From contig NIVC01001010.1 of NCBI GenBank assembly GCA_002269645.1, forward strand, positions 124,001 through 188,000: a stretch of DNA of 64,000 bases, read 5' to 3'. The position numbers were made by a program, and so were the translations under genes. The stretch comes from Macrostomum lignano (taxonomy: Eukaryota). Shown piece after piece: positions 1 to 21,700 of this stretch. Within the stretch, counting starts at the first letter, position 1; each line of letters begins with the position of its first letter. The notes below the pieces were generated by a model, which saw only the letters and a program-made list of their open reading frames with translations, searched no databases and was not told the DNA's origin.

Positions 1-1254
1 AAACTCAACAATCTCCCATCAAACTAAACTCAACAATCTCCCATCAAACTAAACTCAACAATCTCCCATCAAACTAAACTCAACAATCTCCTATCAAACT
101 AAACTCAACAATCTCCCATCAAACTAAACTCAACAATCTCCTATCAAACTAAACTCAACAATCTCCTATCAAACTAAACTCAACAATCTCCCATCAAACT
201 AAACTCAACAATCTCCCATCAAACTAAACTCAACAATCTCCCATCAAACTAAACTCAACAATCTCTCATCAAACTAAACTCAACAATCTCCCATCAAACT
301 AAACTCAACAATCTCCCATCAAACTAAACTCAACAATCTCCCATCAAACTAAACTCAACAATCTCCCATCAAACTAAACTCAACAATCTCCCATCAAACT
401 AAACTCAACAATCTCCCATCAAACTAAACTCAACAATCTCCCATCAAACTAAACTCAACAATCTCCCATCAAACTAAACTCAACAATCTCCCATCAAACT
501 AAACTCAACAATCTCCCATCAAACTAAACTCAACAATCTCCCATCAAACTAAACTCAACAATCTCCCATCAAACTAAACTCAACAATCTCCCATCAAACT
601 AAACTCAACAATCTCCCATCAAACTAAACTCAACAATCTCCCATCAAACTAAACTCAACAATCTCCCATCAAACTAAACTCAACAATCTCCCATCAAACT
701 AAACTCAACAATCTCCTATCAAACTAAACTCAACAATCTCCCATCAAACTAAACTCAACAATCTCCCATCAAACTAAACTCAACAATCTCCTATCAAACT
801 AAACTCAACAATCTCCCATCAAACTAAACTCAACAATATCCTATCAAACTAAACTCAACAATCTCCCATCAAACTAAACTCAACAATCTCCCATCAAACT
901 AAACTCAACAATCTCCCATCAAACTAAACTCAACAATCTCCCATCAAACTAAACTCAACAATCTCCCATCAAACTAAACTCAACAATCTCCCATCAAACT
1001 AAACTCAACAATCTCCCATCAAACTAAACTCAACAATCTCCCATCAAACTAAACTCAACAATCTCCTATCAAACTAAACTCAACAATCTCTCATCAAACT
1101 AAACTCAACAATCTCCCATCAAACTAAACTCAACAATCTCCCATCAAACTAAACTCAACAATCTCCCATCAAACTAAACTCAACAATCTCCTATCAAACT
1201 AAACTCAACAATCTCTCATCAAACTAAACTCAACAATCTCCCATCAAACTAAAC
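1..1254. repeat. 25-bp minisatellite (AAACTCAACAATCTCCCATCAAACT)n, ~50 copies, runs off the window start
   Basis: Period 25 read directly; only sporadic substitutions (ccc/cct/ctc). Confidence 0.97.
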
Positions 1255-3733: not shown

Positions 3734-6700
3734 TCACCTGGCAGAGTTGGTCGAACGCTTGAAAAGTGTCGGCAGTCGAAGACTCGGACCTCCTCCGCCC
3801 TGCTTGCCTCTGTCGGCACTCTCTCCAGCTGCTTCTGCGTCAGACTCCAACAGCGGCTGCCGCTGTTGTTTGATTGGCGCCTCAGCTGGCGGCATGCGAT
3901 AGTTGTGATGCCGGCGGTGTCTGACTTGGCGGCGATGGTGCCTGCCGTGCTCGCAGCTGGCACCGTCTCTGCCGATTCGCTGCAGCTCGTCTGTCTGCGC
4001 TGGCTGCTTAGTTTCGTCTAGCTGTGGTATATACGAGTAGTTGATTTGTTTATTTATGTTTATATATAACTTTTTACCTACTGACAGTAGTAAGATTCAG
4101 ACTTCATCCTTTTTGAAAAGTTGGCACAAAATAATAAAAGCCAAAAAGGAAAATTTGATCACTATATCGGTACTTAATAGCATTAAACAAATGAAATGAA
4201 ACAAAGCGCTTTTTAAAACGGTACATATCCTATGCTCAAATATTCCCAATTCATGTCAAACTGTATCAAAGCGCTACGAAAACCATCTGTGTCAGATGCT
4301 GTAAGTGTCCATCTGTGTCAGATGCTGTAAGTGTGTCCGTCTGTGTCAGATGCTGTAAGTGTGTCCGTCTGTGTCAGATGCTGTAAGTGTCTATCTGCGT
4401 CAGATGCTGTAAGTGTCTATCTGTGTCAGATGCTGTAAGTGTCCATCTGTGTCAGATGCTGTAAGTGTCTATCTGTGTCAGATGCTGTAAGTGTGTCCGT
4501 CTGTGTCAGATGCTGTAAGTGTGTCCGTCTGTGTCAGATGCTGTAAGTGTCTATCTGTGTCAGATGCTGTAAGTGTCCATCTGTTTCAGATGCTGTAAGT
4601 GTCCATCTGTTTCAGATGCTGTAAGTGTCTATCTGTGTCAGATGCTGTAAGCGTCCATCTGTTTCAGATGCTGTAAGTGTCTATCTGTGTCAGATGCTGC
4701 AAATTCCTAGTGAAACAGTAAAGCGACCAAATGATTAAAAATAGTTGAAGAGTAAAAGAGGGCCAAACGGGATCGAAAAGGAAAATTGGCAAGCTGTGGC
4801 GGCGGGGGGTTCGCAAGGATCGGGTTGGGCGCGGGGGATTTCGGGGGGGGGGGGCAAAGACCTATTTTTTGCCTCCGGCCCTCCCGTCAGCCCCGCTAAA
4901 GCTTCCTCCTGCGCAATATTTGGCTTTTAGAGAGGGGAGAAGGGGCCAAATCAAGTGGGGAAGGCGCGGGCGAAGACCGGACTGGAATTATCCCATAGGT
5001 CCTGCATGCTAAATATGTACGAGCGTATATTGGGGGAGAAAAATCCCCACGAGAATTGGAGCTCAGCTCATTATGCACCAGCAAGCTCGCTTCATTTGTG
5101 CCTGGCTTTGATAGAGCTAGATGGAAACGGGCCGCCTGCTGAAGCCGAATTAACTTTGCTGAGGCTGTGCGTGAGCTGCGGATTGCGGCTTGGATTTCCC
5201 TTGCGCTGCGGTGCAGTCCTGCCGCCTGTCTGCTTCTGTGCCGCCTGTCTGCTTTTGTGCCGCCTGTCTGCTTCTGTGCCGCCTGTCTGCTTTTGTGCCG
5301 CCTGTCTGCTTTTGTGCCGCCTGTCTGCTTCTGTGCCGCCTGTCTGCGATTCTATCTGCCTGCGATTCTGTCTGTCTGCAATTCTGTCTGTCTGCGATTC
5401 TGTCTGTCTGCAATTCTGTCTGTCTGCAATTCTGTCTGTCTGCAATTCTGTCTGTCTGCAATTCTGTCTGTCTGCAATTCTGTCTGTCTGCAATTCTGTC
5501 TCTCTGCAATTCTGTCTGTCTGCAATTCTGTCTGTCTGCAATTCTGTCTCTCTGCAATTCTGTCTGTCTGCAATTCTGTCTCTCTGCAATTCTGTCTGTC
5601 TGCAATTCTGTCTCTCTGCAATTCTGTCTCTCTGCAATTCTGTCTGTCTGCAATTCTGTCTCTCTGCATTCTGTCTGTCTGCAATTCTGTCTCTCTGCAA
5701 TTCTGTCTGTCTGCAATTCTGTCTCTCTGCAATTCTGTCTGTCTGCAATTCTGTCTCTCTGCAATTCTGTCTGTCTGCAATTCTGTCTCTCTGCAATTCT
5801 GTCTCTCTTGGCTTCCTCAGAGATTCCTCATTAGCTGAATTGAGACAAACCGTGGCGCCATTGTGGCAACCAAGTCGAATTTATCAACCTGTTTTACTCC
5901 TTACACGCCTTAGCAACAATTGCTAATAATTTTAATTCTCATCAACATATTTTTATACTTAATTTTAATAAGTTTAGGCGACTAATAAGTTTGCTCTGAC
6001 CATTTTTGACAATAGATTGATTGTAATGATGGCAATCGGAACCACTTGAGGCAAGAGCTGGATTGATTAAAGAAAGCGAGTGAGATAATCTATAGGCTGG
6101 AACAATAGTTAAGAATGGCCTATATTATACACGTATAGCTAAGATATGTAATTATAGGGCATTAGCATACACCATGTAATTCCATGACACTGTTCAAACA
6201 CGACTAAGTGTTGCGCAATAACTCCTAATTATTAATAGGGTGCAGTGTTTTCTTTTCATTGTCTTTTTAACTGTATCTTTTCTGCACGAACTTTTAGCAC
6301 CCCCTGAATTTTCCGCAAAATGCACACACAAGCAGAAATACCGAGCCCTCATATTAAATTTTTCACCCTGAAAGGGCTAAAGCCGGCAGCAATTGAGGAG
6401 AAGATAAAGTCTGTACTCCACAACTTGTCCCTCTCTGCGTAATATCGAGCGACTTTACAACGAATTCAAGCGTAGCAGGGTGAGCCATAAAAGTTGAGGC
6501 AGTAGCGCGCACTGTGGGCATCTCAGCTGGGTCAGTGGATGGCATCCTGCGCAAGATCTTGGGCTGTTTCTTCTGAGACTGTCAGGGGATCCTGCTCGCC
6601 GAGTACCTGTCTGTTAGGCACACTGTCACAGGTGTCTGGTCCGCCGAACAGCTGGGCCGGTTTCGTCAGGCAGTGGTCCAGAAGAAGCGGGGGAAGCTGA

Positions 6701-9700
6701 GTGCTGGCCCCCTTGCTGCTTCACGACAATGCCTCAGCTCACACTGCCCAGGTTGCGGTGAATGCTGCCACCACTGCGGGGTTCGAAATCCTCCCACATC
6801 CGGCCTATTCACCAGACCTGGCACCCTCCGATTTTCATCTATTCCGTCAGCTCAAGCGGCCACTCCATGGGCACCGCTTCGAGTCCAAAGAAGAGGTCAT
6901 CACCCTCGCTAACCAGTGGCTACTTCAGAAAAGACTTACTATGAAGTTTTAAAAAAATTACCGAAATTTTACTGCCTATCCTTCCCACTCTACAGCATAG
7001 AAAAAAAACAGTTTGCGTAGGCCTAGACAAAAACTAGCTTTCATGCGCAAATAGTTCCACTTGTGTCAGTAGAGAGATTGGCATGCCAGGAACGAATGCT
7101 TTATGAAAACGAATGTTTAATTAAAGCGGTTACAGAATTTTCTACATAATAAAAGCTACCCAGACTTGCCTAACTCCAACTCTGGTTTCTCTTCATTCCA
7201 CGATTAAATCTTTCGCCTTTTACTAAAGATTTCCGTGGAGGGATACTCTTAGGAGAATTCTCTAGTTTTTGCAGCCCTTTCCTAGAAAGGCTTATTGGAA
7301 GTTGAATAGTTTAGACTAGCCTAGCTTAGCTCTTGAAAGTACTTTAGTTAGCCTTCCATTCCACTGTACATTTGTTTTTATCTCTACCCCACCCCTAGTC
7401 TTATCTTGCAGTCGCCCCACCCCTCTCAGCGAGCGCACTTTGTGTGCCTCCTGACTCATTAGTTAGTTGTAGTTTAGGTTTAGTTTGAGTGTACCCAAAT
7501 AATCACGCCATATGGCTGCAAATCGCGCCAGCGCTAAAAAGATGGACTGCCGGCCCTCTCTCGAGCACCGGTATCGTCCGAACGAAGCCTACGGTCGCCA
7601 GCTTCTTGGACTGACGCCGACAGCTGAGCCATCGACTGCGCAGGCCTGATGCGAGCTCGACGCAGTCTGGAAGGCCGCCACTCGATCAGCCCACCGGCCG
7701 GCGAGCTCTTGCGCAACGCAGAGGAGATCCTGCGAGAGAATGAGCAGCTGCCGGAGGCTGCAGGCGCAGAGGCAGAGCAGCGCATGTCTCTCGACTGCGA
7801 CGAGCCAGGCCAGAAAAGCGCCCTGCCATCCAACGAGGCCGCAGCAACCACCGAGCCACCAACTGCCGAGTCCAGCGAGCTCGGTGCGGCAGCGGCAGCG
7901 CCGACGTCTGAGGAGCGCCAGCAATCGGCTGCAGACCAGGCCTCGACGCTGCCAAAGCCCCCTGCCGAGCAACTGGACGCTGACATCAGTCAAATCATCT
8001 TCCCTGATGAGCCTGACTTGACTGACTGTCAGCAGACGATCTACGCCAGCGACAGCACCATCATCTATGCGCCCAAGTTCCTGAGCGAGGTCGCGGACCA
8101 AGTCTACGAGCGCCTGATCACCGACCTGCTGCCTCTGGCCTTTCAGCATCGTCCGAGTGAGCAGCGCCGCGTCTACTGGATCGGCCCGTCGTACACCTAC
8201 AGCGGGGTTGAGCTGAAGGAAAATCTAGACTGGCATCAGGTAATTGAAGACATTCGTGACTTCATTTACCATGATACCCAGTTCGATGTCCCGAAGTTCA
8301 ACTCCGTGTTGGTGAACTTCTACACCGAGCCGGGAGACCGGATTCCCTGGCACTCGGACGATGAGGATGAGCTCGGCGACAGGCCGACGATCGCGACCGT
8401 GTCCTTCGGCGCTGAGCGGCTGTTCATGCTGCGCCGTCGGGACGGCAACGTGACGCACCGCTTTCCAACGCTGCCAGGCTCGCTGATTCTGATGGCAGGA
8501 AACTGCCAGAAACGCCTGCAGCACCAGGTGCCCGCCGCCCACTCTCAGAATGGCGTCCGCATCTCGCTAACATTCCGTGTCACCAAGCCGGAGCTGCGGC
8601 GCAAGCGGCTCTGCCGGATGACCCGACCTACAGCCAGCCGCTCAACGGCGGCCCATTCGGCGACGACCAAGGCGGTCGGGACGACGACCAAGGCGGCCAC
8701 GACGACGACCAGGGCGGCCGGGGCGACGACAGGCCCCAGGAGCGGCAGGCGACGGCGACGCGAGACCGCGAAGGCGATCGGGGTCGGCGCGGCCGTGGCG
8801 GCCACCAGCGAGGCAGGCGAGGAGGTCGCGGCGCGGCGTCCGGTGCGGCGGCGGCTTCGGCGGCTTCCTGGCCGGCCGGTGCGGCGGCGGCTTCGGCGAC
8901 AAGCGCGCAGGCGGCTGCGGCAGCGCGGCCCTACGCGCAGGTTGCGGCGCGCCCTGCGCCGCCCAGAAGGCCCCAGGCTGCCATCCCGCCGATCGTTTTT
9001 GAGGTGCACCGGGACGCGGCCAACAAGCTGATGCAGTTCGTTGCCTGGCTGCAGACCAACTTTGCCGGCGAAGCTAGAGCCGTCAACACTGCGCCGATGG
9101 CGAATCAGCCGGCCTATCTCGTGTTCCCAGCGTCGGAGCGGGACTACAACGTCTTCCTGGGCGGCGCGCTGCGCGAGGAGAAGCTGCTCGAGCATCCCGT
9201 AAAGCGCCGTCCAGCCCGAGCCCGACCGCTGGACAACAGAACAGGGCCCGACAGAGTGCAGCAGCAGCCGGTACGCACCTTCGTCGCTACTGAGGTGCCC
9301 CTCGCATTCTCGGAGGCTGACTTCGCGACCCTGTTGCGCGGCACGCTCAAGCTGGACATTGTCAGCGTCCACAGAATCCGAGCCAGAGCGACTGGGAAGG
9401 CAACCCAGTTCGTGCGCATCTTCACAAAGTCGGCGATGACCTACGAGAAGTGCCTCCGCGATGGCATCTGCACCGACTTCTTGAAGTTCAACTGCGAGGA
9501 CAGCCGCACAGACGAGCCGGTCCGCGCTCTGCAATGCCAGCGCTGCCAGGAGTTCGGCCACCGCGCTGCTCAGTGTCGGGGGCAGCAGCGCTGCCGGATT
9601 TGCGGCGGCCAGCATTCCTGGAAGGAGTGCCAGCACGAGGGCCCAGCGGTCTGCGCCAACTGCGGCGGCTCGCACCGAACCACCAGTCGAGCCTGCACCG

Positions 9701-12700
9701 TCGCCAAGGCGGAGCACGACAAGGCGACCAGAGCGGCTGCTGAGGCCAAAGCCGCGGCGCGAGCTGCGGAAGCTGCGGCCGCTGCTGCCCCAGTGTCAAG
9801 TGAGACCGACGACGCCGCCGCCGACGACGACTCCGACAGCGGCTGGCTGATCCGCCGAGGCAGGCGCACGGTGCCGGTACCCGCCGCGATCCGGCCGCTT
9901 GTCATCGTGACCGATGATGCCAGGAGCGCTCCGGCGGCAGAGACCGAGTCTGATGTCAATGCGACTGCTCCGTCAGCTGATGCCGGCCAGGCGGTGCAGC
10001 TGCAGCTTAGTGACTTTATGTCGGTGGTGAGCATGCTGTTGCCCCTGATCACCCGCTCTCTGACTCAAGTGGTTGTGCAGGCCCTGTCCCGACCGCCTGG
10101 GGAGGTCCTCACTGTGGAATCAACCAGTAAAATGGTTGAGGACATTGTGCGGGCTGCACTCCAGGAAGTGCCGGGCATGGCTGGCATGACCACTGAGTCC
10201 TAGTCTCAGGCAGCTAAACTCAAGACTTGAATTGAAACTTCAGTGCGTTAACTGTAGACTCAAACAATCAAACCACAGCCCTGAAGATTATGCATTTAAA
10301 CTGCAGGGGATTCAACCCGAAAATCAGAGAGCTGACACAGTGGGTCGTCAGTCAGGAGCTAGACATTGCCCTCTTTTCTGAGACCATTCTCAAAAGTTGT
10401 CACACTGTCCAGATTCCCGGGTACTCCATCATTCGGTATGATACCCCGCAAGTCAAACGCGGGCTTCTCCTTGCCCACTCTCCTCGCGTCAAACTCACAA
10501 ATGTGCGCTTGCAGTATGACAATGTCAACCATGAAGCCATCTCTTGCACCGTGAGCTTGTCTGACAACTCTGGTCCTGACTTCAATCTCGCTCTGGTGTA
10601 CAGGTCTCCAGCACCGTACCATCTGAACCTGAACCTACTAAAAATCTTCTCTCTCGTAGGCGCAGTGTGCTCATGGGTGACCTCAATGCCAGACACCGCT
10701 TCCTCGGGGTGACAGCAGCAACAACATGGCTGGCTACCAGCTGCACGACTGGCTGTCTGAGGGCCCCACCTCGCCCACCATTCTCAATCAAGCCGGTCAG
10801 TTCACCAGACTGGCCACCAAAAACGGGCTGATTTCTAGGAATGTCTTGGACCTCGCCCTGGCCACTGAGGACTTTCTCCCATTTGTGCAGGACTTTGAGG
10901 TGGGTCCTGACCTGGGCAGTGACCACTTACCTATAATCCTCACGCTCAATATTCAGTCGAAGAAATGGGCTGGTCCCCCCAGACCCAAAAACTTCTCAAA
11001 AACAAACTGGGACGAGTTCAGACTCAAAATCAGTGAAGCTTTGAGCTCAGATCAGAATATTAAATTATCAAATGCTGACCAAATCAATGCCGAAGTGGAT
11101 CACATCACAAAGGCCATTCACACCGTGATTGACTCCACAGTACCAGACTGTGGTGCCAAAAACGCCCTACCCAAGTACATCCTCGACCTGATCAAAGAGC
11201 GCAGACGACTCAGACGCCTCTTCTTCAGCACACGGGATCAAAATTTCAAAACCCAAGCAAACCAGCTCGCAAATCGCATAAAGAGAGAAATTAACTCCTT
11301 CCAGAATGGAAAGCTCACCAAAGTCTGTGAGAGTATTGTTGAAAACAGCAAGAACAAGAAAGTGAAGAATTTCTGGCATGACACTAAAAAGCTGATGGGC
11401 AAATTTAAGCCAACCTCGATCCCCAGCCTCACCCTGGGTCAAACAACTGCGCACACAGATCTGGAGAAGGCTAACCTTCTAGCCGAGACTCTGGACTCAA
11501 AGATGCGCCCAGTCCCTTCCACATGCGAACAGCTCAAACGTGAGGTGGCCGATGTGGCACAGCTCACCTCATTCTACCCCGTTCCTGAGGGAATCGAACC
11601 CATCGAGACCACCCACTTGATGCTGCATTCTCTGTGGCAGACACAGTGTGGGAACTGGAGCACCTCAGGCCTGATGGAGCACCCGGGCTGGACAAGATTC
11701 CCAACTGCGTCCTCAAGCTGGGCTTAGAGGGGGTGGCAATCACGAGACTCACTAACCTCTTCAACGCCTGCTACGGTCGAGGGATTTTCCCCAGCGCCTG
11801 GAAGAAAGCTGTGGTGACAATGATCCCCAAGCCGGACAAACCGCCCGAACACCCCAACTCCTACAGACCAATCAGCCTGACCTCATGTCTGGGCAAAGTG
11901 TTTGAGAAGCTTATAGCAAAAAGACTCACCAAGCACCTTGAGGATAATAAGACCCTAGGAGATGACCAATGCGCCTACCGCAAAATTCACTCCACGTATG
12001 ACAACCTGTGCCGTCTGGCACAAGATGTCATGGTAGCAAAGTGCAAAGCTAAAAAGTCCGCTGCAGTCTTCCTGGATGCAGAGGCAGCTTTTGACTCCAC
12101 CTGGCACGACAAGATCAGGCATAGCATGCTCACCGATGGTTTTCCACCTATGCTCATGCGAATCCTGTCTGACTACCTGCGAGACAGACAGATCCAGGTT
12201 CGAATCGAGGGGGCCCTAAGCGATCCCCACACCATCCAGGCTGGCGTCCCTCAGGGAGGCATTCTGAGCCCTCTCCTGTACCTCCTCTTCGTCAGCTCAA
12301 TGCCGACTCCCACCATCTCAAGCGTCAAACGCAGTCAATTCGCAGACGACATGGCCGTCTGGGCCTCAGCAGACACCTTTGCGGGGCTCCGAACATCCCT
12401 TCAAAGCTACCTCAGACGAGTCTTTGACTGGTGCGGTAAACAAGGCATTAGACTGAATGCCGGTAAAAGCAAAGCAATCGCTTTCAACTACAAACCCACT
12501 AGGCGCATGGACTTGCGACCCAAACTGTATCTGGGGGACACTGAGGTTCCGTACTGTCAGGAGGTGAAATTCCTGGGTGTCCTCCTTGACCAGAGCCTCT
12601 GCCTGAACAAACATGTGGACAACATGGCAGATACCAGCAGAGCCATTGTAATGTCACTGTGCAGAATTGCAAAAATGACAAAGCTGAGTAGCACCACCCT

Positions 12701-15700
12701 CAGAATGCTGTACAGGGCATACGGAGAAAGCGCTCTCACCTACGGAGCGCCAATCCTGAGCCAAATCTGTGCGACTAACCAAATCAAATTGCAGAAAATT
12801 CAAAACCTGGCTCTCCGTATCTGCTATGGTGTGCCATCCTACATCAGCATTGAATACCTGCACAAGCTGGCAGGTATGCCGATGCTCGCAGACAGGGTCA
12901 AGCAGCTGGGGGTGGCTTGGCTGCTCAAGATGAGGGCAGCCAAGCTCCACAGCTTCCACATTGAGCCGGAAGCCCCTCGGGCTCCGGGCCGAACCCCTGT
13001 CCTCAATGTCCTCTGGGATGCCATGAGGCGTCGGGAAAGAAACAGGGGATTCCCACCCCAGGGTTAGGCTGGCTACCAGCCTTCCAAACCGGAAGTGACC
13101 ACGCTCTGAAACGCAACTAATAAAACTAAACTTGCTGCCTGAGACAGAGATCGGTTGATCAGTCATTAGGACTGATTAGGTAATCTCTATGTCTCCTCGC
13201 GTTTCTTTTTACAATTTTCCCAACTGTGTTTTTTACCCAACTGCTCTACAAATATTACTAATTGCTTTTTTACACCTTTACTATATTCATTCTATTTTTA
13301 CAACTAAATTCAAATATGCGCTATTGCATTTTTAATCTCTATTTTTTACTTAAATGTCTTGCTTTTATTCTCAATAGGCCTTCAAATATCTAGCACGTAT
13401 TTTTTAGATGTCCTGTTTTTATTAGATCCCTTCTTTGTGTGGGATTTCCCTCCCCTCTTTTTTATCCCCAAATGCGTGCAAAATACTGCAAAATATTGAA
13501 AAATAGTTTTATATATGTATATTTTTAATTTCAATATTCGTATTAAATATTCAAATCGAAATCTTGTAAATATTTTTAATTCTTTCGATCAAATACAAAA
13601 TATAACTGCGGCAGAGTTCTTCGGAACTGACCCGCGCCGGTTTCGACGGCACCTCGTTTTAACAACAAAGATTTCCGTGGAGGGATACTCTTAGGAGAAT
13701 TCTCTAGTTTTTGCAGGCCTTTCCTAGAAAGGCTTATTGGAAGTTAAATAGTTTAGACTAGCCTAGTTTAGCTCTTAAGAGTACTTTAGTTAGCCTTCCA
13801 TTCCACTGTACATTTGTTTTTTTATCTCTACCCCACCCCTAGTCTTATCTTGCAGTCGCCCCACCCCTCTCAGCGAGCGCACTTTGTGTGCCTCCTGACT
13901 CATTAGTTAGTTGTAGTTTAGGTTTAGTGTGAGTGCACCCAAATAATCACGCCATATGGCTGCAAATCGCGCCAGCGCTAAAAAGATGGACTGCCGGCCC
14001 TCTCTCGAGCACCGGTATCGTCCGAACGAAGCCTACGGTCGCCAGCTTCTTGGACTGACGCCGACAGCTGAGCCATCGACTGCGCAGGCCTGATGCGAGC
14101 TCGACGCAGTCTGGAAGGCCGCCACTCGATCAGCCCACCGGCCGGCGAGCTCTTGCGCAACGCAGAGGAGATCCTGCGAGAGAATGAGCAGCTGCCGGAG
14201 GCTGCAGGCGCAGAGGCAGAGCAGCGCATGTCTCTCGACTGCGACGAGCCAGGCCAGACAAGCGCCCTGCCATCCAACGAGGCCGCAGCAACCACCGAGC
14301 CACCAACTGCCGAGACCAGCGAGCTCAGTGCGGCAGCGGCAGCGCCGACGTCTGAGGAGCGCCAGCAATCGGCTGCAGACCAGGCCTCGACGCTGCCAAA
14401 GCCCCCTGCCGAGCAACTGGACGCTGACATCAGTCAAATCATCTTCCCTGATGAGCCTGACTTGACTGACTGTCAGCAGACGATCTACGCCAGCGACAGC
14501 ACCATCATCTATGCGCCCAAGTTCCTGAGCGAGGTCGCGGACCAAGTCTACGAGCGCCTGATCACCGACCTGCTGCCTCTGGCCTTTCAGCATCGTCCGA
14601 GTGAGCAGTGCCGCGTCTACTGGATCGACTGCACACAGACTCCATCTGTGTGCAGTATTTGTCCACTTTTTCAAACTCCAAATGTATGCAAAGAAATTCC
14701 AAATATTGAAAAATAGTTTTATTTATTTAAACTTTTATTTCAATATTCTTTCAATATCTAAATCAAATGCACTGCGCCGACCAGAAGGCTTCAGGCTGCC
14801 ATCCCGCCGGTGGTTTTCAAAGTGTAACAGGTCGCGGCCAACAAGCTGGTGCCCTATATTGCCTGGCTGCTCGTACAGGCAAATTTTTTGCTGGTGAAGC
14901 CGCGCCGTCAACACTGCGCAGATGGCGAATCAGCCGGCCTACATCGTATTGCCGGCGTCGGGGCGAGACTAAAATGTCTTCCTGGGCGGCGCGCTGCGTG
15001 AGGAAAAGCTGCTTGAACATCCGTCCAGAGCCCGACCGCTGGATAACCCATACAGGGCCCGACAGAGTCCAGCAGCAGCCAGTCATCACATTTGTCGCAC
15101 CTGACGTGCCTTTTGAGATCTCAGAGGCGACCCTCTGCTCTGTAGGATGCCATAAGGCTTCGGGAAAGAAACAGGGGATTCCTAATCCAAGGTTAGGCTG
15201 GTCGACAGTCTCCCAGAGCCGAAGTGAGCACGCGCTGAAATGCATTAAAGACTATTTATGCTGCCTGAGCCAGAGAGATCGGATGATAGGACCCTTGTAT
15301 GATCTGTAATCTCCCTGTGCAAATTGACTTTATTCAAACTATTTGTATTTTTTGACAGCTTTTACAAATACCCCTGGATGCTTTTATACCAATGATATAC
15401 TCGTACTACCTATAAAATTGTATCTGAACATGCGCTATTGCGTTTGATTTCATTTTTTACTCAGTAGCCTCTTTTTGCCTTTAACAGGCTCTTAAAAATC
15501 CAGCATGCATTTTTTAGATTTCCTTATTTTTATCACCTGTAAATATTTAAATTCTTTCGATTAAATAAAACAATAATACAGATATGTACCCGTTTTTACG
15601 GCACCTCGTTTTAACAACAACGATTTCCGTGAAGAGGAACATTCAAATTCAATGAGTGTTCCCTGATTTGTGAAACCCCTTACAAGAAATTGTACTAATG

Positions 15701-18700
15701 AAGCAAAAACATTGCTTGTCAATTCCCTCTAAGGCGTGATCGCAAGCCCATAGGACGCACGCAACACCATTTTCAAGTGTTGAAGTGTGCGGCGGAGTTT
15801 TTCGGAACTGATCTGCGCTAAGTTTTTACGGCCCCTCGTTTTAACAAAGATTTCCGTGATGAGGTACTCTCAACGAGAATTACATGTACTCTGATTTGTG
15901 CAACCCTTACAAAGGGTACAATAGACTTTGAATAGTTTAGCTCTATCTCAAAGTACGAGTACATAGCTAGCCCCTCCATCCATTCCACTGTACATTTATT
16001 TCCCCACTCTTCTAGTTTTATTTTGTAGTCGCCCCACTTCTTACTGAGCGGATTTTGTGTGCCTCCTGACCCTTAGAGTTTAGTGTTTTAGTTCGAGTGT
16101 ACCAAAAAGAAATCACGCCATATGGCTGCGAAGCGGATCGCAGAAGCCGAGGTCCAGGCAGGCCTCGACGCCGTGACCGAGTGGTGCGCCTCCCGCAAGC
16201 TCGCCCTTAATCCTACCAAGAGCGAGGCTGCCTTTTTCTCCATAGACCCGGCGAAGGCAAAATGGTCCCCGCGTCTTAGCCTCGGCCAAGCCCCACTCAA
16301 GCGCAATCTCACGCCGCGGCTGCTCGGCCTTACTTACGATCGGCTCCTCACCTTCAACACGCACACGGAAGGAGTTTGCAGGAAGGTGCATTCACGCAAT
16401 CGAATGCTGGTCTGCCTCGCCGCGCGCGATTGGGAATGGCAGAAAGACGCCCTCAAGCGCACTTTTATCGCCATGCAACGGAGTATCATGCTGTACGCCG
16501 ACCCCGCCTGTCACCCTTGGCTAGACGGCACCACTTTTGAGAAGCTCCAACGTTCGCAAAACGCCGCTCTCCGAATCATCACCGGCCAGCACCGCTCAAC
16601 GCCGATTGAAGCGCTGCGCATCGAGGCCAGTTTTTGCTTTGCTCTTTCCGTACCACAAGCGACATGGCGACTGGTCAGGTCAACCACCGCTCGGCCAGAG
16701 GCGGCACGCTTCCAACCTGCTCGCCACTTTGCCACCAGAGCGATAGTTGCGCGAACCACTTGACACCCGCTCTGCCTTCTCCCGCCCCGCCATCGTCATC
16801 CCTCATTACCCCGCGCTTATCTGCATCTATTGCGACGGCTCCGCCACTGAGGGCACCACCAACGGCGGTTTCTCTGTGGTCATCTGCACGGGTGACCCCT
16901 CCCCCCCCCCCAAGTGGTGTAGCACATCTCTGCCACCGGGCGCGCTCTCACCAGCTCCTTCGATGAGAAGCTCGCCGCTCCCCGTTGCGCTCTCCATTGG
17001 CTCGCTTCTGGTGCCCACTCTCAGTCGATGCTCTGCGCGCTCCAGAGCCCTACCTGTCGTATTTGGCCTACTCTCCTTCTGCCGCAATGCCAGTCAACAT
17101 CCGACGCGATGACGCAGACAGCGTACACGTTACACAGAAGAAAACGGCAGCTCGAAGGGCTTGCATGTTAAACGCATTTACATCTGCGACCTTCTCGATG
17201 TATAAGAATTTGCCTCTGACGGGTCAACAATTCAAGAGCTCTGGGATCGTCATGGATTACATCAGACAGCACGTTCTAGGACAAGTTAACATCATCGTGG
17301 AGAGAAACCGATTTTAGAAACGTCAAAAAACAATGGAGGAAATTTCAGCTACAATTTCAATTTCAAGAGTAATGGGTTGACTAAAGAGTAGTTTGATGAC
17401 TTGGCTGGGCTAATTGTTGTTAGTGTTGTTTGCATGTACTTTATTCAGTGTTTTGGAGGTGGCGTTTTTACCCTGTTCAGTACGTGCGCCCTTCTACAAT
17501 ATTTCGCTGTACGTTCTTATGTACGCTTTTCATTCTGAACGCTCTTGTACAATACGATGGACGCATTCCCTCCAGCATGCTGTATGGACACCCGACAAGG
17601 GACCCCCCTGCTCATTTACGAAGCTTTAACCTTGAGTGGTACAGCACAATTGAGCAGATGGAGCAGACTGCATCTGAAACCCACAAGACAGTGATGCAGC
17701 AGTACAACAAGTCCAAGAAGAGTCTCGACCGAATCAGAATTGGCTCGACTGTGGTTCTACAAGACCCGACAACCAAGCTGGGGCAACGGAGGGGCGTGGT
17801 GGTGGAGGTAGGCAAACACCGCGACTACATATACCTGATCAAGCTAACTAGTGGCCGAATACTACGGAGAACTCGTATCTGCATCCGGCCAGCACTACCA
17901 TGGAATGCCGATGATCTGCACCAGGCGACTAGCAAGCTGGTGGATCGAGAATGTACCAAGACGGACAATGACGGAGACTTGAGGATCAAAGGCCACAGGA
18001 GAGACCTCGCGTTAGTGCCAGATCGACAAAAAATATCCCACCAGTTCGGTTTCAGTGCAGCCGACTGGGGCAGCCGAAAGTTCTGTTCGTCGAGTAAATA
18101 AGGAACAATGACTTTAAAGGGCAGATGGTATAGATGATGAGATACCGTATTTATATCTATGGCCCTGACCCAAAGCCTACGTGCTTGGCCCGCTATCAGA
18201 GCAGCCCAACATGCAATAGGTATAACACTGTACACAATTACCTTGGCCAGGTGTTTAGCAATGAGCCGCCAGCGCGGTAGCAGCAGGTGGCGCTGCAAGG
18301 CGAAGGCCAGAATGACCAGTGGGAAGGCGAGGGCTGCGTAGGCCAGCTGCAGAAACTGGGCCAGGCAGTTCAGCGTGAGCAGCATCAGCACGTGGGCCAG
18401 CTGCAGAGCCGTGAACGCCAGCAGCACAGCGCTCGGCACGTCCAAGTAGGGCTTCGGCTGGCGATTCTTCTTCAGTTTCAGCAGGTTGAACAGCCGGTCG
18501 GCCAGCTGCAGGTCGGCCAGGGCGGCCAGGCCCATGCAGAGGAACATGCCGTCCATGGCGGCCAGCGGGATGAGGCGCAGCAGCCGGGCCGCCAGCACCG
18601 AGGCCACCAGCAGGGCCCCCACGGCCAGGCCGCTGACCCGCTGCTCGGCCACGCCAAGGACGCGCCTCGGACAGCCGGGAATCGGGTTAGCCGGATCCGC

Positions 18701-21700
18701 CAGCGTCAGCACCCGGACGTGCGTGTGCGATCGGATGGTGGCCCCTGTCAGCAGCGGCCAGCCCAGCAGGCCGTGCAGCGGCGGCGCCAGCGACGCGATG
18801 AGAGCCAGGCTGAGGTGACGGCCAGCCGGCTTGGCCAGGCGCTGCTCCAGGCCGCTGTCGCACAGGCCGGTCTCGGTGAACAGCACCACGGCGGTGCAGC
18901 AGCCGATCAGCAGGGCGATGAGGTGGCCGAAGGCGCCAACGGTGGCCAGGTCGGCTGCGCTGGGCAGGCGTGGCGACAGGCCCGACAGCAGCTGGGTGAG
19001 ATTGCCGCTGAGCTGCGGGAGTGCCATGCCGGTGCCTTTCTTTAGGTTTGATCAGTTCGGCAAAACTGAGGGCGATCTCGGAAATTGGAATGGCGATTTA
19101 CGCGGGATTTCATTTGTGCCGGAATGAGTTAGCTGAGAAAGGGAAAATTCCCCTGCATGGTGGTTAGTCATCCATTCTCCCTTCTCTCCTTTCATCTCAC
19201 TCTTCTCCTTTCCTTTCCTCTCCTCTCCTCTGCTCTCCTCTCCTCTCCTCTCCTCTCCTCTCCTCTCCTCTCCTCTCTCCTCTCATCTACTCTCCTCTCC
19301 TCTCCTCTCCTCTCCTCTCCTCCTCTCCTCTCCTCTCTCCTCTCGTCTACTCTCCTCTCCTCTCTTCTCTCCTCTCCTCTCTCCTCTCCTTTCTTTCCTC
19401 TCTTCTCTTCTCCTCTCTCCTCTCCTCTTCTCTCTTCTCTCCTCTCCTCTCTTCTCTCCTCTCCTCTCTTCTCTTCTCCTCTCCTCTCCTCTCCTCTCCT
19501 TTCTTCTCTCTCCCCTCTCCTCTCCTCTTACCCATAATTTGGAAATCCCATGTGAGTGAAATAGTCCCAATTAACCTCTCAGCGCTAAAGCTAAATACCC
19601 CGCACAATGGAGCATCTCAATAAAACACCCCCATACCTGCAGCGTGGCCAGTTCGTGATGCCGCATTGCAGTATTCGACAGCAGGGTGACCGCTGCGATG
19701 GCCAGCGGCACGTTCAATCCGGCTATGAGGTCCCGGGTTCGACGCCCTAAATAATTGCCCCGTTTAAAGCGCATAATTCGCAGCGCCAGCAGCGCCGTGG
19801 CCAGCGTCAGGAAGGCGGCGGCGGCGGAGGCGGCGCAGGACTCGCCGGCCAGCTGGGCGAACATGCGCACAGTCGGGCGCAGCAGGAAGAAGATGGCAAC
19901 GAACAGGTTGAAGATCTCCTCGGTGGCGCGGGTGATTCTGCCTGCCAGGCCGGCTCCGTTCAGCAGCAGGATGGCCAGGCCGCACAGGCCCGTGTAGGCG
20001 CAGCAGACTGGGCGGAAGGCCCGCCAGGGCAGGCCTAGTGAGGCCGACAGCGAGCTGATGGCCTGGGTTTGGAGGAATTGGGAGGGTTGATTGACATTGC
20101 TGACTATAGAGTGACATTGATACCGATAGAGTGACATTGATACCGATAGTGACATTGATACCGATAGAGTGACATTGATACCGATAGAGTGACATTGATA
20201 CCGATAGAGTGACATTGATACCGATAGAGTGACATTGATACCGATAGAGTGACATTGATACCGATAGAGTGACATTGATACCGATAGAGTGACATTGATA
20301 CCGATAGAGTGACATTGATACCGATAGAGTGACATTGATACCGATAGAGTGACATTGATACCAATAGAGTGACATTGATACCGATAGAGTGACATTGATA
20401 CCGATAGAGTGACATTGATACCGATAGAGTGACATTGATACCGATAGAGTGACATTGATACCGATAGAGTGAAATTAATACCGATAGAGTGACATTGATA
20501 CCGATAGAGTGACATTGATACCAATAGAGTGACATTGATACCAATAGAGTGACATTGATACCGATAGAGTGACATTGATGTCGATAGAGTGACATTGATA
20601 CCGATAGAGTGACATTGATGTCGATAGAGTGACATTGATGTCGATAGAGTGACATTGATGTCGATAGAGTGACATCGATGTCGATAGAGTGACATTGATA
20701 CCAATAGAGTGACATTGATGTCGATAGAGTGACATTGATGTCGATAGAGTGACATCGATGTCGATAGAGTGACATTGATACCAATAGAGTGACATTGATG
20801 TCGATAGAGTGACATCGATGTCGATAGAGTGACATCGATGTCGATAGAGTGACATTGATACCAATAGAGTGACATCGATGTCGATAGAGTGACATTGATA
20901 CCAATAGAGTGACATTGATGTCGATAGAGTGACATTGATGAAAATAGAGTGACGCTGCAAGGAATATTGGACTGAAATTCTAAAGAAATACTGCTGGAGG
21001 CATCTGAATTAGAAAATTGTAAGACATGAGAACTACCTGCTCCATGATGAAGATCGGGCCAGTCACTCCCACCAGCATCATGGGCTGGCCGCCGGCGGCA
21101 GCGAAGGCCAGCTGTCCGAGGCCGCTGGCCACCAGAGTCCGGCCGACGGTCAGCTCGCCCGCAGTCTCGTTGTGCAGCATAGCGCCGAACGACACCGCCG
21201 GGGCCAGGCATGTGAAAAACACGAACAGCAGGCCGGTTGCTATTGGCAACGCGTGACGCCTGGCGTCAGCCAGGTCGCCCGGGTAGCGGCGCCGCAGGTT
21301 GCTCAAGTCGCTGAGCAGTCCAGACGCAGCCAGCCAGACCGGGCAGCGCCAATTACCCGGCGACGCCGTAGCTGCTGCCGCAACCGGCGTCGCCAGCCCG
21401 ACATCGGCCGACGAAAATCCGACATCGTCGACTCCATCGACATCGGCTACGCGATGCTCACTGCCGCTGTCGTCCTCAACCTCGGCGGCGGCGGCCTCCT
21501 CGAACCGGACGAGCTCCTCGATGGTGTCCATAGTCCAGGCGGCTGGGGAGGGCAGCACCACGGTGCCGTCCAGGCTGCTGTGCAGGGCGGCGACGAGGTC
21601 CCACCGGCAGCTGGCCGAGTAGAGGCGGGCGCGGAACACCGGGTCCATCGCCAGGCAGGCAAACACGCGGCCAAGCTCGAAGGCCAGCACCGGGTCCGCG

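Follow-up and report, generated by a model that had tools for sequence, protein, structure and literature searches.

The 64-kb stretch of Macrostomum lignano DNA analysed here (the window) contains one Rfam gathering match, a complete U5 snRNA gene on the forward strand at 7177–7292 (RF00020, model positions 1–117). The match covers the whole model and scores 81 bits (gathering score 40). The original prediction had recognised an intact gene at 7178–7293, one base off from the coordinates given here. Upstream of the gene two conserved forward-strand blocks would provide an snRNA-type promoter. A proximal-sequence-element-like block, TGCTTTATGAAAACGAATGTTTAATTAAAGCGGT, occupies 7097–7130 (about −80 to −47 of U5) and a TATA-like block, TTTCTACATAATAAAAGCTA, lies at 7139–7158 (about −38 to −19). 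The first is nearly invariant between the window and a second U5 locus, M2, where the surrounding flank is 80–87% identical and carries a 185-bp indel; the second is kept in all four paralogous loci described below, and positions −18 to −1 are variable. The 5′ half of U5 (nt 1–48, 7177–7224), which runs through loop I to ...GCCTTTTACT, occurs once per array at each of the four loci, is the only portion of U5 that is not repeated within the array, and is identical across the loci except at position 3.

From U5 nt 49 onwards the gene continues without a break into a 6.4-kb APE-type LINE, as had been predicted, and the U5 at 7177–7292 is a hybrid whose 5′ half comes from the target and whose 3′ half is brought by the element. 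This first copy, W_1, is full-length (7225–13666, forward strand, 6442 bp), is 99.0–99.6% identical to the copies at M2 and departs from the family majority by 1.55 substitutions per kb. Its head, at 7225–7319, consists of U5 nt 49–116, including the Sm site and 3′ stem-loop, followed by 27 nt that are also present in the native U5 3′ flank. An element-specific 5′ UTR follows at 7320–7511; homologous 5′ UTR sequence also follows the U5 half in copies 2 and 4. The 3′ UTR (13068–13666) ends in ...ACGGCACCTCGTTTTAAC(AAC), and this 3′ end is kept in all units. Hairpins predicted at the element 3′ end were not significant (z = −1.7).

In its family majority state the ORF1 region (7512–10203) is a single open frame of 907 aa, made up of an N-terminal region, an AlkB domain, a linker and a gag-like part with three CCHC knuckles. 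The host assignment follows from the ORF1 protein, which is 99–100% identical to M. lignano proteins. The 2OG-Fe(II) dioxygenase (AlkB) domain at 8162–8578 (Pfam PF13532, 1.2e-21) has its HxD, H and RxSxTxR motifs all in place and is ALKBH3-like, the top solved structure being human ALKBH3 (1.2e-23). The zinc knuckles at 9532–9696 were read from the translation, and their match to Pfam zf-CCHC is weak (E = 0.011). In the protein P0124 the AlkB domain is joined in frame to gag. ORF2 (pol, 10290–13067) encodes an APE endonuclease (~10290–10940) and a reverse transcriptase (~11823–12581); neither an RNase H nor a C-terminal zinc finger was found among its domains. Both frames of W_1 are disrupted, ORF1 by deletions of 13 bp at 7639 and 1 bp at 8607, and pol by three 1-bp deletions private to this copy (~10639, ~10705 and ~11608). 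An intact 926-aa pol is found at L003:12792–15569. The pol of copy M_1 is intact (926 aa), which we count as a likely sign of recent activity; none of the copies sampled has both ORFs open.

Downstream of W_1, units 2–4 all start at U5 nt 49, directly after the preceding ...CCTCGTTTTAAC(AAC)n end. The junctions join ...ACGGCACCTCGTTTTAACAAC to AAAGATTTCC at 13666/13667, ...TTTTAACAAC to AACGATTTCC at 15618/15619 and ...TTTTAAC to AAAGATTTCC at 15845/15846, exactly as originally described and at the same U5 position. In shuffled sequence the 18-nt 3′-end motif would be expected 0.02 times (3 seen) and the U5 3′-half motif 0.67 times (4 seen). What had been described as a single deleted mosaic, copy 2, is two pieces that differ in age. 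The first, W_2 (13667–14627), comprises the initial 961 bp, from U5 nt 49, of a younger copy and is 98.6% identical to copy 1 by self-BLAST; the mosaic proper is the old rearranged remnant joined to it (copy 2b, 14628–15618), in which 3′ UTR and ORF1-region pieces of 69–78% identity (self-BLAST, 14663–15533) precede an intact 3′ end. Unit 3 (15619–15845, 227 bp) has a B-type U5-like head of ~95 nt, a type that also closes the young part of the L006 array, and then a 60-nt element 3′ end. Unit 4 (15846 to ~16130, ~284 bp) has a C-type U5-like head, then an old 5′ UTR of 71% identity with the start codon of ORF1 behind it; it is cut short at ~16130 by an unrelated LINE, represented by a C-terminal RT fragment (28% amino-acid identity). 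All units lie on the forward strand. The predicted fall in intactness along the array holds for the distal units, which are older and end in the 227-bp and 284-bp remnants, but not for copy 1, which is full-length yet broken in both frames.

Three further U5 loci (M2, L005 and L006) were reached in assembly GCA_002269645.1 via the contigs of matching ORF1 proteins, giving a sample of four loci that were each found through the element. All three bear the same element in the same orientation as the window array. M2 consists of U5, four full-length-class copies and a final U5 3′ half which, with its 27 nt TATTAGAAGTTGAATAGTTTAGACTAG, continues into unique AT-rich DNA. At L005, U5 nt 1–62 is followed by a 5′-truncated copy, one full-length copy and one partial copy; at L006, U5 precedes an internally deleted copy, one full-length copy and old remnants. 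The Rfam U5 model, proposed earlier as a check, gave full U5 scores of 81–84 bits at the window, L003 (83.8 bits) and L006 (83.5 bits). At the four loci all 12 of the 3′ junctions fall at a single U5 position between nt 48 and 49, where the invariant loop I has its 3′ edge (TTTTACT^AAAG), and every full-length unit opens with U5 nt 49–116 and ~27 nt of U5 3′ flank. The assembly has five annotated ORF1 proteins, each of which maps to a U5 array, and no element DNA was seen beyond the arrays in about 145 kb examined. The specificity for U5 that was proposed from the window alone therefore extends to three more arrays. The 3′ tails differ between junctions, from one to three AAC repeats with extra A's or TTTTT, as expected from separate reverse-transcription events. 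Upstream homology extends over more than 3 kb among the four loci, which are segmental paralogues, and the flanks of the window, L005 and L006 are 95–99% identical, near the identity of the elements themselves, so that some units may be inherited duplicates and not separate insertions.

The arrays run head-to-tail, with damage and age greater away from the promoter. Measured as substitutions per kb from the majority, W_1 stands at 1.6 versus 6.2 for W_2, M_1 to M_3 at 0.5–1.2 versus 7.4 for M_4, and L5_2 at 3.3 versus 7.8 for L5_3. The divergence data support a trend of age rising with distance from the promoter, though not a strict one: at least one copy is less diverged than M_1, and L6_1 and L6_2 are similar in divergence. 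W_1 and M_1, which sit next to the promoter at two anciently diverged loci, are mutual closest relatives, 1.7 substitutions per kb apart, with flanks that are 80–87% identical and differ by the 185-bp indel. The claim that new copies land upstream of older ones is supported by this relationship and by the older distal units at every locus. M_2 is separated from M_3 by 0.6 substitutions per kb and the two have indels in common, a near-identity that also fits tandem duplication or gene conversion.

Is the U5 3′ half carried by the element, or duplicated from the target at each insertion? A stagger of ~95 bp (U5 nt 49–143) would duplicate the 3′ half from the target without any RNA-borne copy, the element proper then beginning after the 27-nt U5 flank. 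For full-length copies this predicts an identical array structure, and the last M2 unit shows that U5 nt 49–116 plus 27 nt is native gene sequence. Long duplications are also known in some site-specific LINEs, that of SLACS being about 49 bp. We nevertheless consider this explanation unlikely, on two lines of evidence that are each a single instance. At the 5′-truncated copy of L005, U5 stops at nt 62 and an 8-nt filler, a repeat of U5 nt 52–59, comes next, whereas a target-derived duplication would be independent of cDNA length. Copy L6_2 has an A-type U5 head on its left and a B-type head on its right, where a duplication should give identical heads at insertion. Both observations argue that the U5 3′ half travels in the element RNA, and support the earlier view that this half belongs to the element and is probably not a target-site duplication.

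Amplification at the DNA level from one or a few ancient U5-adjacent insertions, by unequal crossing-over, tandem duplication or duplication of segments or chromosomes as known from the DV1 line, would dispense with ongoing site-specific retrotransposition. The paralogy of the four loci beyond 3 kb upstream, the 180 Mb of duplicated blocks at least 95% identical in the assembly (PMC5730564) and the M_2/M_3 pair would all fit. Against this, W_1 and M_1 differ by 0.17% within flanks that differ by 13–20% and by the indel; tail length varies by junction, one unit is 5′-truncated with a filler junction, units of one array spread widely in age, and the promoter-adjacent unit differs in kind between loci (full-length, truncated or internally deleted). 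We regard such amplification as similarly unlikely. The least probable account is that the U5-derived head serves the element itself, through Sm-site-dependent RNA stability, nuclear import or promoter context, that new copies home to the heads of resident copies, and that the worm relies on U5 genes other than those at the array starts. All U5 seen sits on arrays, and the older B- and C-type heads retain an Sm-like site and 3′ stem-loop via compensatory changes, the B type being predicted to fold as its own hairpin without pairing with the U5 5′ half. However, the U5 5′ halves follow promoter blocks conserved in diverged paralogues, the hybrid genes score 81–84 bits with every conserved U5 feature present, and the M2 array closes with a U5 3′ half and unique flank, as for a native gene. 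The promoter blocks and the scores support the view that the array starts are probably real U5 genes.

We conclude that the arrays very probably represent an APE-type non-LTR retrotransposon family of M. lignano that is specific for U5 snRNA genes and restores its target. Insertion would proceed by target-primed reverse transcription from a bottom-strand nick at 48/49, with a second cut ~14 bp downstream, a stagger estimated from one truncated copy. U5 from ~nt 63 onwards would be copied from the element RNA, so that this RNA would have to start inside or upstream of U5. Its simplest source would be the U5 promoter of an occupied gene, with read-through past the U5 3′-end signal; such read-through is only implied, by the need for a template that begins at or before ~nt 63. 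Because snRNA-type promoters are coupled to 3′-box cleavage, a 6-kb read-through message would not be expected to form efficiently. The U5 sequence in the cDNA would let the 5′ junction form through homology with the target, which would explain why the rebuilt gene is seamless. Since full-length units open with U5 nt 49–116, a full-length insertion leaves the promoter with a complete U5 and displaces the previous 3′ half in the downstream direction. A fresh target would arise only next to the 5′ half, and each new full-length copy would land upstream of older ones. A 5′-truncated insertion would destroy the gene and end the cycle.

LINEs specific for U2 snRNA genes are known, namely Keno (Tx1 clade, APE) and Utopia (restriction-like endonuclease), and disrupted U2 genes outnumber intact ones in Phytophthora and Nasonia (PMC4640811). 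Like these, the U5 element inserts at a single conserved site within a low-copy spliceosomal snRNA gene and shares the orientation of that gene, with displaced snRNA 3′ fragments adjoining element 3′ ends; occasional tandem insertions reported for Utopia-1_NVit (PMC4640811) recall the arrays here. In contrast, its target is U5, and it restores this gene, whereas Keno and Utopia leave U2 genes disrupted. With an APE and no restriction-like endonuclease it is not a Utopia, and without L1/Tx1-like features it is probably not Keno-like. The legend to Fig. 3 of Kojima 2015 (PMC4494074) lists an unnamed Tx1-clade family with a U5 snRNA target. Compared by that legend entry alone, the two have the recorded target in common, so U5 targeting by a LINE is not unprecedented and the novelty first suggested does not extend to the target. 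The 926-aa pol lacks a C-terminal zinc finger and is no more similar to L1 ORF2p than to R2, which argues against Tx1 membership.

As with R2 and R1, the element would depend on a host-gene promoter, host sequence at the RNA 5′ end could pair the cDNA with the upstream target, and read-through into the downstream target could fix the 3′ junction precisely. R2 and R1, however, use polymerase I and not an RNA polymerase II snRNA-type promoter, and they inactivate the occupied 28S copy, with no replacement for the downstream gene part such as the U5 element carries. R2 frees its 5′ end by an HDV-like ribozyme, whereas searches of the 64-kb window, including Rfam, found no ribozyme family in the U5 element. 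A functional analogue only is provided by bacterial and archaeal integrative elements and phages that insert in tRNA or tmRNA genes. These also carry the gene's 3′ portion, regenerate the gene and displace its old 3′ end, and repeated integration gives promoter-side-ordered tandem arrays bounded by 3′ fragments; they use site-specific recombinases on DNA (attP x attB), in contrast to reverse transcription at a nick in an animal snRNA gene. AlkB domains occur in other selfish RNA-based replicators, orchid Ty3/Gypsy elements (PMC9289625) and plant flexiviruses, where they are proposed to strip methyl marks or damage off the replicator's own RNA. In the U5 element the domain lies within a non-LTR ORF1 and is nearest ALKBH3, not ALKBH5. 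On its predicted domains this ORF1 is an ALKBH3-like dioxygenase fused to a gag-like nucleic-acid-binding protein; our literature search turned up no LINE described as carrying an AlkB domain. The cycle proposed for this family would keep the U5 gene whole and open to further insertion, and thereby produce ordered stacks of elements.

A search with Rfam returned a single RNA gene in the 64 kb of the window, a full-length U5 spliceosomal RNA (RF00020) at 7177-7292 on the forward strand, with a score of 81 bits where the gathering score is 40. From U5 nucleotide 49 (AAAGATTTCC, window 7225) the sequence runs unbroken through the remainder of U5 into a further 27 bases and then into the 5' UTR and reading frames of a LINE. 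By self-comparison this first copy occupies 7225-13666 (+), and its end (...ACGGCACCTCGTTTTAACAAC) directly abuts a restart at AAAGATTTCC. The young part of a second copy follows on the same strand (13667-14627, 961 bp) and matches copy 1 at 98.6%; after 14627 come shuffled fragments of 69-78% identity, leading to a second conserved 3' end at 15618, and then, still on the forward strand, a 227-bp unit (unit 3, 15619-15845) and a 284-bp unit (unit 4, 15846-16129). Alignments revealed that every unit in the window starts at the identical U5 nucleotide and that in units 1, 2 and 4 the U5 half is followed by homologous UTR. Junction motifs were observed three times against 0.02 expected from shuffled sequence, and four times against 0.67. 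The U5-LINE array of the original prediction is thus borne out by Rfam, self-comparison and alignment, with coordinates right to within one base. Copy 1, listed there as full-length, is not intact, as the pol gene is split over three frames.

The window copies W_1 and W_2 have in common a 13-bp deletion (GAGCCCGCCGCCA) at 7639/7640, which is absent from all copies elsewhere and throws ORF1 out of frame shortly past its start. This suggests either local copying between the two or one shared source. Unit 4 is cut off by a fragment of a different LINE (16122-17115), made up of the C-terminal part of an RT, 28% identical in amino acids to the pol of the U5 element, and then a DGS-containing stretch that is RNase H-like by eye; the downstream ORFs at 16122-18101 gave no significant Pfam call.

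Hypothetical M. lignano proteins match the ORF1 protein at 99-100% identity, and we took three more loci from the GCA_002269645.1 contigs that encode ORF1-matching proteins. All three consist of a U5 gene and then an array of the same element. The M2 locus (NIVC01002892.1) has a full U5 gene and four copies, three of them full-length and the fourth carrying a 141-bp deletion; at the far end of the array a last U5 3' half and 27 nt give way to unique AT-rich DNA, which delimits the host-derived part of the element as U5 nt 49-116 plus 27 nt of 3' flank. The locus L006 contains a full U5 gene; of the units behind it, the first is a copy with an internal deletion, the next is full-length and two more are old remnants. 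At L005 the U5 sequence extends to nt 62 only and is followed by an 8-nt filler and a copy of which only the last 578 bp are left; behind these lie a full-length copy and an incomplete one that runs into an assembly gap. The U5 genes of the window, M2 and L006 are seamless hybrids that score 81, 83.8 and 83.5 bits over their full length (gathering score 40), and the covariance-model match spans loop I, the Sm site and the 3' stem-loop. Full-length copies thus regenerate a complete U5 gene and the truncated copy destroys it.

The insertion point is fixed at the 3' edge of loop I: across the four loci, window included, 12/12 3' junctions fall between the same two nucleotides, U5 nt 48/49. The 3' tails consist of one to three AAC repeats, with or without extra A's and sometimes with an extra T. 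No element sequence was found outside the arrays in the ~145 kb examined. Within these four loci the element is therefore a target-sequence-specific LINE that uses one position in one orientation, and the U5 specificity that had been predicted from the window is upheld by the sequence following the element 3' end. Hallmarks of target-primed reverse transcription are also present, namely 5' truncation (a single case, the 578-bp L005 copy) and a variable simple 3' tail.

Each full-length copy begins with a U5 3' half, and for these copies a 95-bp target-site duplication would predict the same picture as a half that the element itself brings. Two observations, each a single case, speak against the duplication. 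A duplication made at the target would be independent of the extent of reverse transcription, so the stop at U5 nt 62 upstream of the truncated L005 copy argues against it. At L006 the full-length copy L6_2 has a U5 half of the common A type in front, whereas the half it displaced is of the variant B type. We therefore reject the duplication, and the U5 head is borne by the element, as originally predicted; the two cases combined make it much the more likely that this half is carried in the element RNA. The L005 junction (9058-9135 of that contig) reads U5 nt 1-62, a T, a second GATTTCCG (U5 nt 52-59) and then the element from position ~5916. It suggests a join via CCG microhomology and resembles the product of a template switch while the 5' end was being joined, and it further suggests a second-strand cut ~14 bp downstream of the first, repeating AAAGATTTCCGTGG.

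The four loci share homology over more than 3 kb of upstream sequence and are therefore segmental paralogues, and large recent duplications are on record for the DV1 line (PMC5730564). The arrays could then have arisen by amplification at the DNA level only. The window, L005 and L006 have flank identities of 95-99%, near the identity of the elements, so some of their inner units may indeed be inherited. The M2 locus is older relative to the other three, its flanks showing 80-87% identity and a 185-bp indel, and yet its promoter-proximal copy differs from that of the window by 1.7 substitutions per kb, which argues against DNA-level amplification as the sole source, and we reject it. Copies inside one array are 9-12 substitutions per kb apart. 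The closeness of the proximal copies would be easy to obtain through recent retrotransposition into both genes and hard to obtain through locus duplication. An assembly artefact was considered and rejected too, the differing internal structures of the four arrays arguing against it. Upstream of the U5 gene two blocks (window 7097-7130 and 7139-7158) are near-invariant between M2 and the other loci, and the 18 bp immediately before the gene are variable; the conserved blocks would fit the proximal element and TATA-like box of an snRNA promoter.

The surroundings of the arrays hold several other features. Satellite arrays occupy window 1-1254, 2006-2813, 4283-4699 and 5220-5808, with units of 25, 14, 26 (and 160), 19 and 16 bp, and the block at 4283-5808 recurs in the same order upstream of 4/4 U5 loci. 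Just upstream of the U5 promoter, at 6561-6949, lies a remnant of a Tc1/mariner-like transposase C-terminus (PAYSPDLAPSDFHLF...) common to the window, L005 and L006, for which Pfam made no significant call (DDE_3, E=0.15). On the reverse strand two long open frames at 17825-21211 match the membrane domain of HCO3-/SLC4 transporters (2.3e-34 and 1.3e-9) and probably represent a host gene directly downstream of the array, and a 655-aa open frame at 46450-48417 (-) contains a BTB/POZ domain (5.3e-8).

The arrays are ordered. Measured as substitutions per kb from the family majority, divergence in the window rises from 1.6 in the promoter-proximal W_1 to 6.2 in the distal W_2, and in M2 from 1.2, 0.5 and 0.6 in copies M_1, M_2 and M_3 to 7.4 in M_4. 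The corresponding values in L005 are 3.4 for the truncated copy and 3.3 for L5_2, against 7.8 for the distal L5_3, and in L006 4.9 for L6_1 and 5.4 for L6_2. Heavily decayed remnants, where an array has them, always occupy its most distal places. The predicted polarity, with younger units nearer the U5 5' half, consequently holds as a trend and fails as a strict rule. M_2 and M_3 have indels in common and may be a local duplication.

Older units carry U5-like heads that are not of the A type. These B, C and further remnant heads were found in window units 3 and 4 (15619-15700 and 15846-15915) and in the distal units of L006 (12115-12195 and 12243-12300). The terminal stem-loop reads GCCUUUC-CUA-GAAAGGC in the A type, CCCCUUC-CAA-GAAGGGG in the B type and ACCCUU-ACA-AAGGGU in the C type, so that the 3' stem is preserved through paired, compensatory changes, and an Sm-like site is preserved as well. 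The preserved stem and Sm-like site suggest that the structure of the head was under selection in earlier subfamilies. The B-type head has its own internal 9-bp hairpin in place of the pairing with the U5 5' half.

Pfam identified an AlkB-type 2OG-Fe(II) dioxygenase (8162-8578), an APE endonuclease and a reverse transcriptase, and the gag-like frame carries three CCHC knuckles. The pol of window copy 1 is spread over three frames through three 1-bp deletions private to that copy, as seen against its sisters, and a sister copy in M2 (L003:12792-15569) has an uninterrupted pol of 926 aa. Within this single ORF an N-terminal apurinic/apyrimidinic-like endonuclease (Exo_endo_phos_2 2.2e-11, Exo_endo_phos 1.5e-5) is combined with a reverse transcriptase (RVT_1 1.6e-36), a domain content that makes the element a non-LTR retrotransposon of the APE type. 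The majority state of ORF1 over seven copies is one open frame of 907 aa, from an ATG at 7512 to 10203, which includes the AlkB catalytic motifs as well as the zinc knuckles. In every individual copy of the seven the frame is interrupted, and some single-base indels may be long-read assembly errors.

The dioxygenase domain matched PF13532 at 1.2e-21 and human ALKBH3 at 1.2e-23, and the catalytic motifs HxD...H and Rx5R are found as WHSDDE, LQHQVP and RISLTFR, features that assign it, as a predicted enzyme, to the AlkB family with an ALKBH3-like character. ORF1 thus joins an ALKBH3-like 2OG-Fe(II) dioxygenase domain to a gag-like CCHC protein (7512-10203; also P0124, an L006 protein with AlkB joined in frame to gag). 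Its closest non-self homologues are ~40% identical and include bacteria-named proteins, and an exact-protein look-up of the window gag ORF gave nothing on record. No LINE with an AlkB domain came up in our literature search; the domain is known from Ty3/Gypsy elements of orchids (PMC9289625). The AlkB-gag ORF1 provides a new link between LINE biology and RNA and DNA demethylation. The 5' UTR contains a polypyrimidine tract ending in AG (cttatcttgcag|TCGCCCCAC, window 7398-7412), kept in the old unit 4 as ttttattttgtag|TCGCCCCAC (window 16018-16032), which could be a candidate splice or trans-splice acceptor, M. lignano being a trans-splicing species. Hairpins at the element 3' end were no better than those of shuffled sequence (z = -1.7).

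The Tx1 clade, to which Keno and the recorded U5-targeting family belong, is marked by an ORF2 that is long and L1-like and in which a Cys-His motif follows the reverse transcriptase. Against a Tx1-like pol stand the short pol here, the reverse transcriptase equally near L1 and R2, and the region after the RT of the 926-aa ORF2 (~160 aa with no recognised domain), where neither a Cys/His motif nor a zinc-finger Pfam match at E<=1 was found. Members of the R1 clade, many of them site-specific, combine an R1Bm/TRAS1-like endonuclease with a Cys-His motif after the RT. The APE of our element is at best weakly similar to any solved endonuclease, matching TRAS1 at E=0.0048, the same value as for the L1 endonuclease, and R1Bm not at all, and with no C-terminal Cys-His motif the R1 clade is not supported. 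The Utopia, NeSL and R2 group has a restriction-like endonuclease downstream of the RT, in contrast to the N-terminal APE seen here. Solved structures did not place the element either: the PDB matches of its reverse transcriptase are L1 ORF2p and R2, with about equal scores (67.5 bits for human L1 ORF2p, 62.3 bits for R2), and the APE falls weakly and near-equally to TRAS1 and L1. Jockey elements pair an APE with an RT, lack RNase H and encode three CCHC knuckles in ORF1. The U5 element has the same features, which also occur in other clades and are therefore not diagnostic; its tail is (AAC)n, not poly(A), and the sole 'jockey' label came from automatic annotation of a spider protein that is 35% identical. 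Relatives are at most 39% identical, save two uncharacterised sequences, L001 (66% RT identity, Logan run SRR28338156) and L002 (57%, a JGI metagenome), whose contigs contain neither U5 nor the element 3' end. The 5545-bp L001 contig, which holds the closest foreign pol relative, carries C/A-rich repeats over a long 3' region, lacks an AAC tail, and may represent a sister family in another flatworm. A metagenome scan with the intact pol returned just relatives of 27-30% identity with no U5 nearby.

Our core interpretation, which we hold with considerable confidence, is that of a U5-specific LINE that restores its target. The template RNA would include U5 from at least ~nt 63 onward, and its start would then lie within or upstream of U5; since a promoter is present there only at the first unit of an array, the simplest source of RNA would be transcription that starts at the U5 promoter and reads through. 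The seamless 5' junction would result from pairing of the target with U5 sequence at the cDNA end. For R2 and R1, 28S sequence has been proposed to give such junctions. The 3' junction would be fixed by transcripts that extend past the element 3' end and include part of the following U5 half. The coupling of snRNA promoters to 3'-box cleavage counts against easy read-through. No ribozyme able to free a 5' end was found by Rfam in window 5000-20000, at gathering threshold or at E<=10. In the U5-to-ORF1 interval no ribozyme or other RNA family was found, unlike R2-type co-transcription, in which the 5' junction bears an HDV-like ribozyme.

The usual view of site-specific LINEs is that they persist by inactivating copies of multicopy genes that the host can spare. 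For this reason snRNA genes, with their low copy number, have been called a poor niche, and targeting of snRNA genes was described by Kojima and Jurka only for Keno and Utopia (both at U2), Dada-U1 and Dada-U6, with disrupted U2 genes outnumbering intact ones in the case of Utopia (PMC4640811). Mutsu likewise disrupts 5S genes (PMC5340908). In the legend of Fig. 3 in Kojima 2015, one of the targets given for Tx1-clade families is 'U5, U5 snRNA', and so a U5-specific LINE is already on record (PMC4494074). Of the novelty originally claimed, U5 targeting is thereby lost, and what stands is the restoration of the target gene by a LINE, of which the literature searched gave no report. The present element is undescribed in the same literature, and the M. 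lignano genome and transposon papers make no mention of it; the family may be catalogued in Repbase.

Rebuilding the target removes the cost of inactivation, and the same act regenerates the landing site and keeps the host promoter beside the newest copy. Prokaryotic tRNA-gene islands use the same strategy, achieved here via reverse transcription in an animal. The element offers a natural design for 'safe' targeted insertion in which the target gene is left whole, its arrays form a built-in chronological record of insertion, and, as transgenesis works in M. lignano, the model is experimentally testable. A more far-reaching possibility, which we regard as unlikely, is that all or most of the U5 genes at work in the worm are hybrids and owe their 3' halves and 3'-end signals to the LINE, making the element a gene-replacing resident and not a gene-disrupting parasite. 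If so, read-through transcription from the U5 promoter would yield element RNA with a complete U5 snRNA at its 5' end, and this RNA could re-enter the nucleus via the Sm site and the route of snRNP assembly and import. The ALKBH3-like domain of ORF1p could then clear the template RNA or cDNA of methyl marks or damage, and the element would also drive the concerted evolution of U5 3' halves, as represented by the A, B and C heads.
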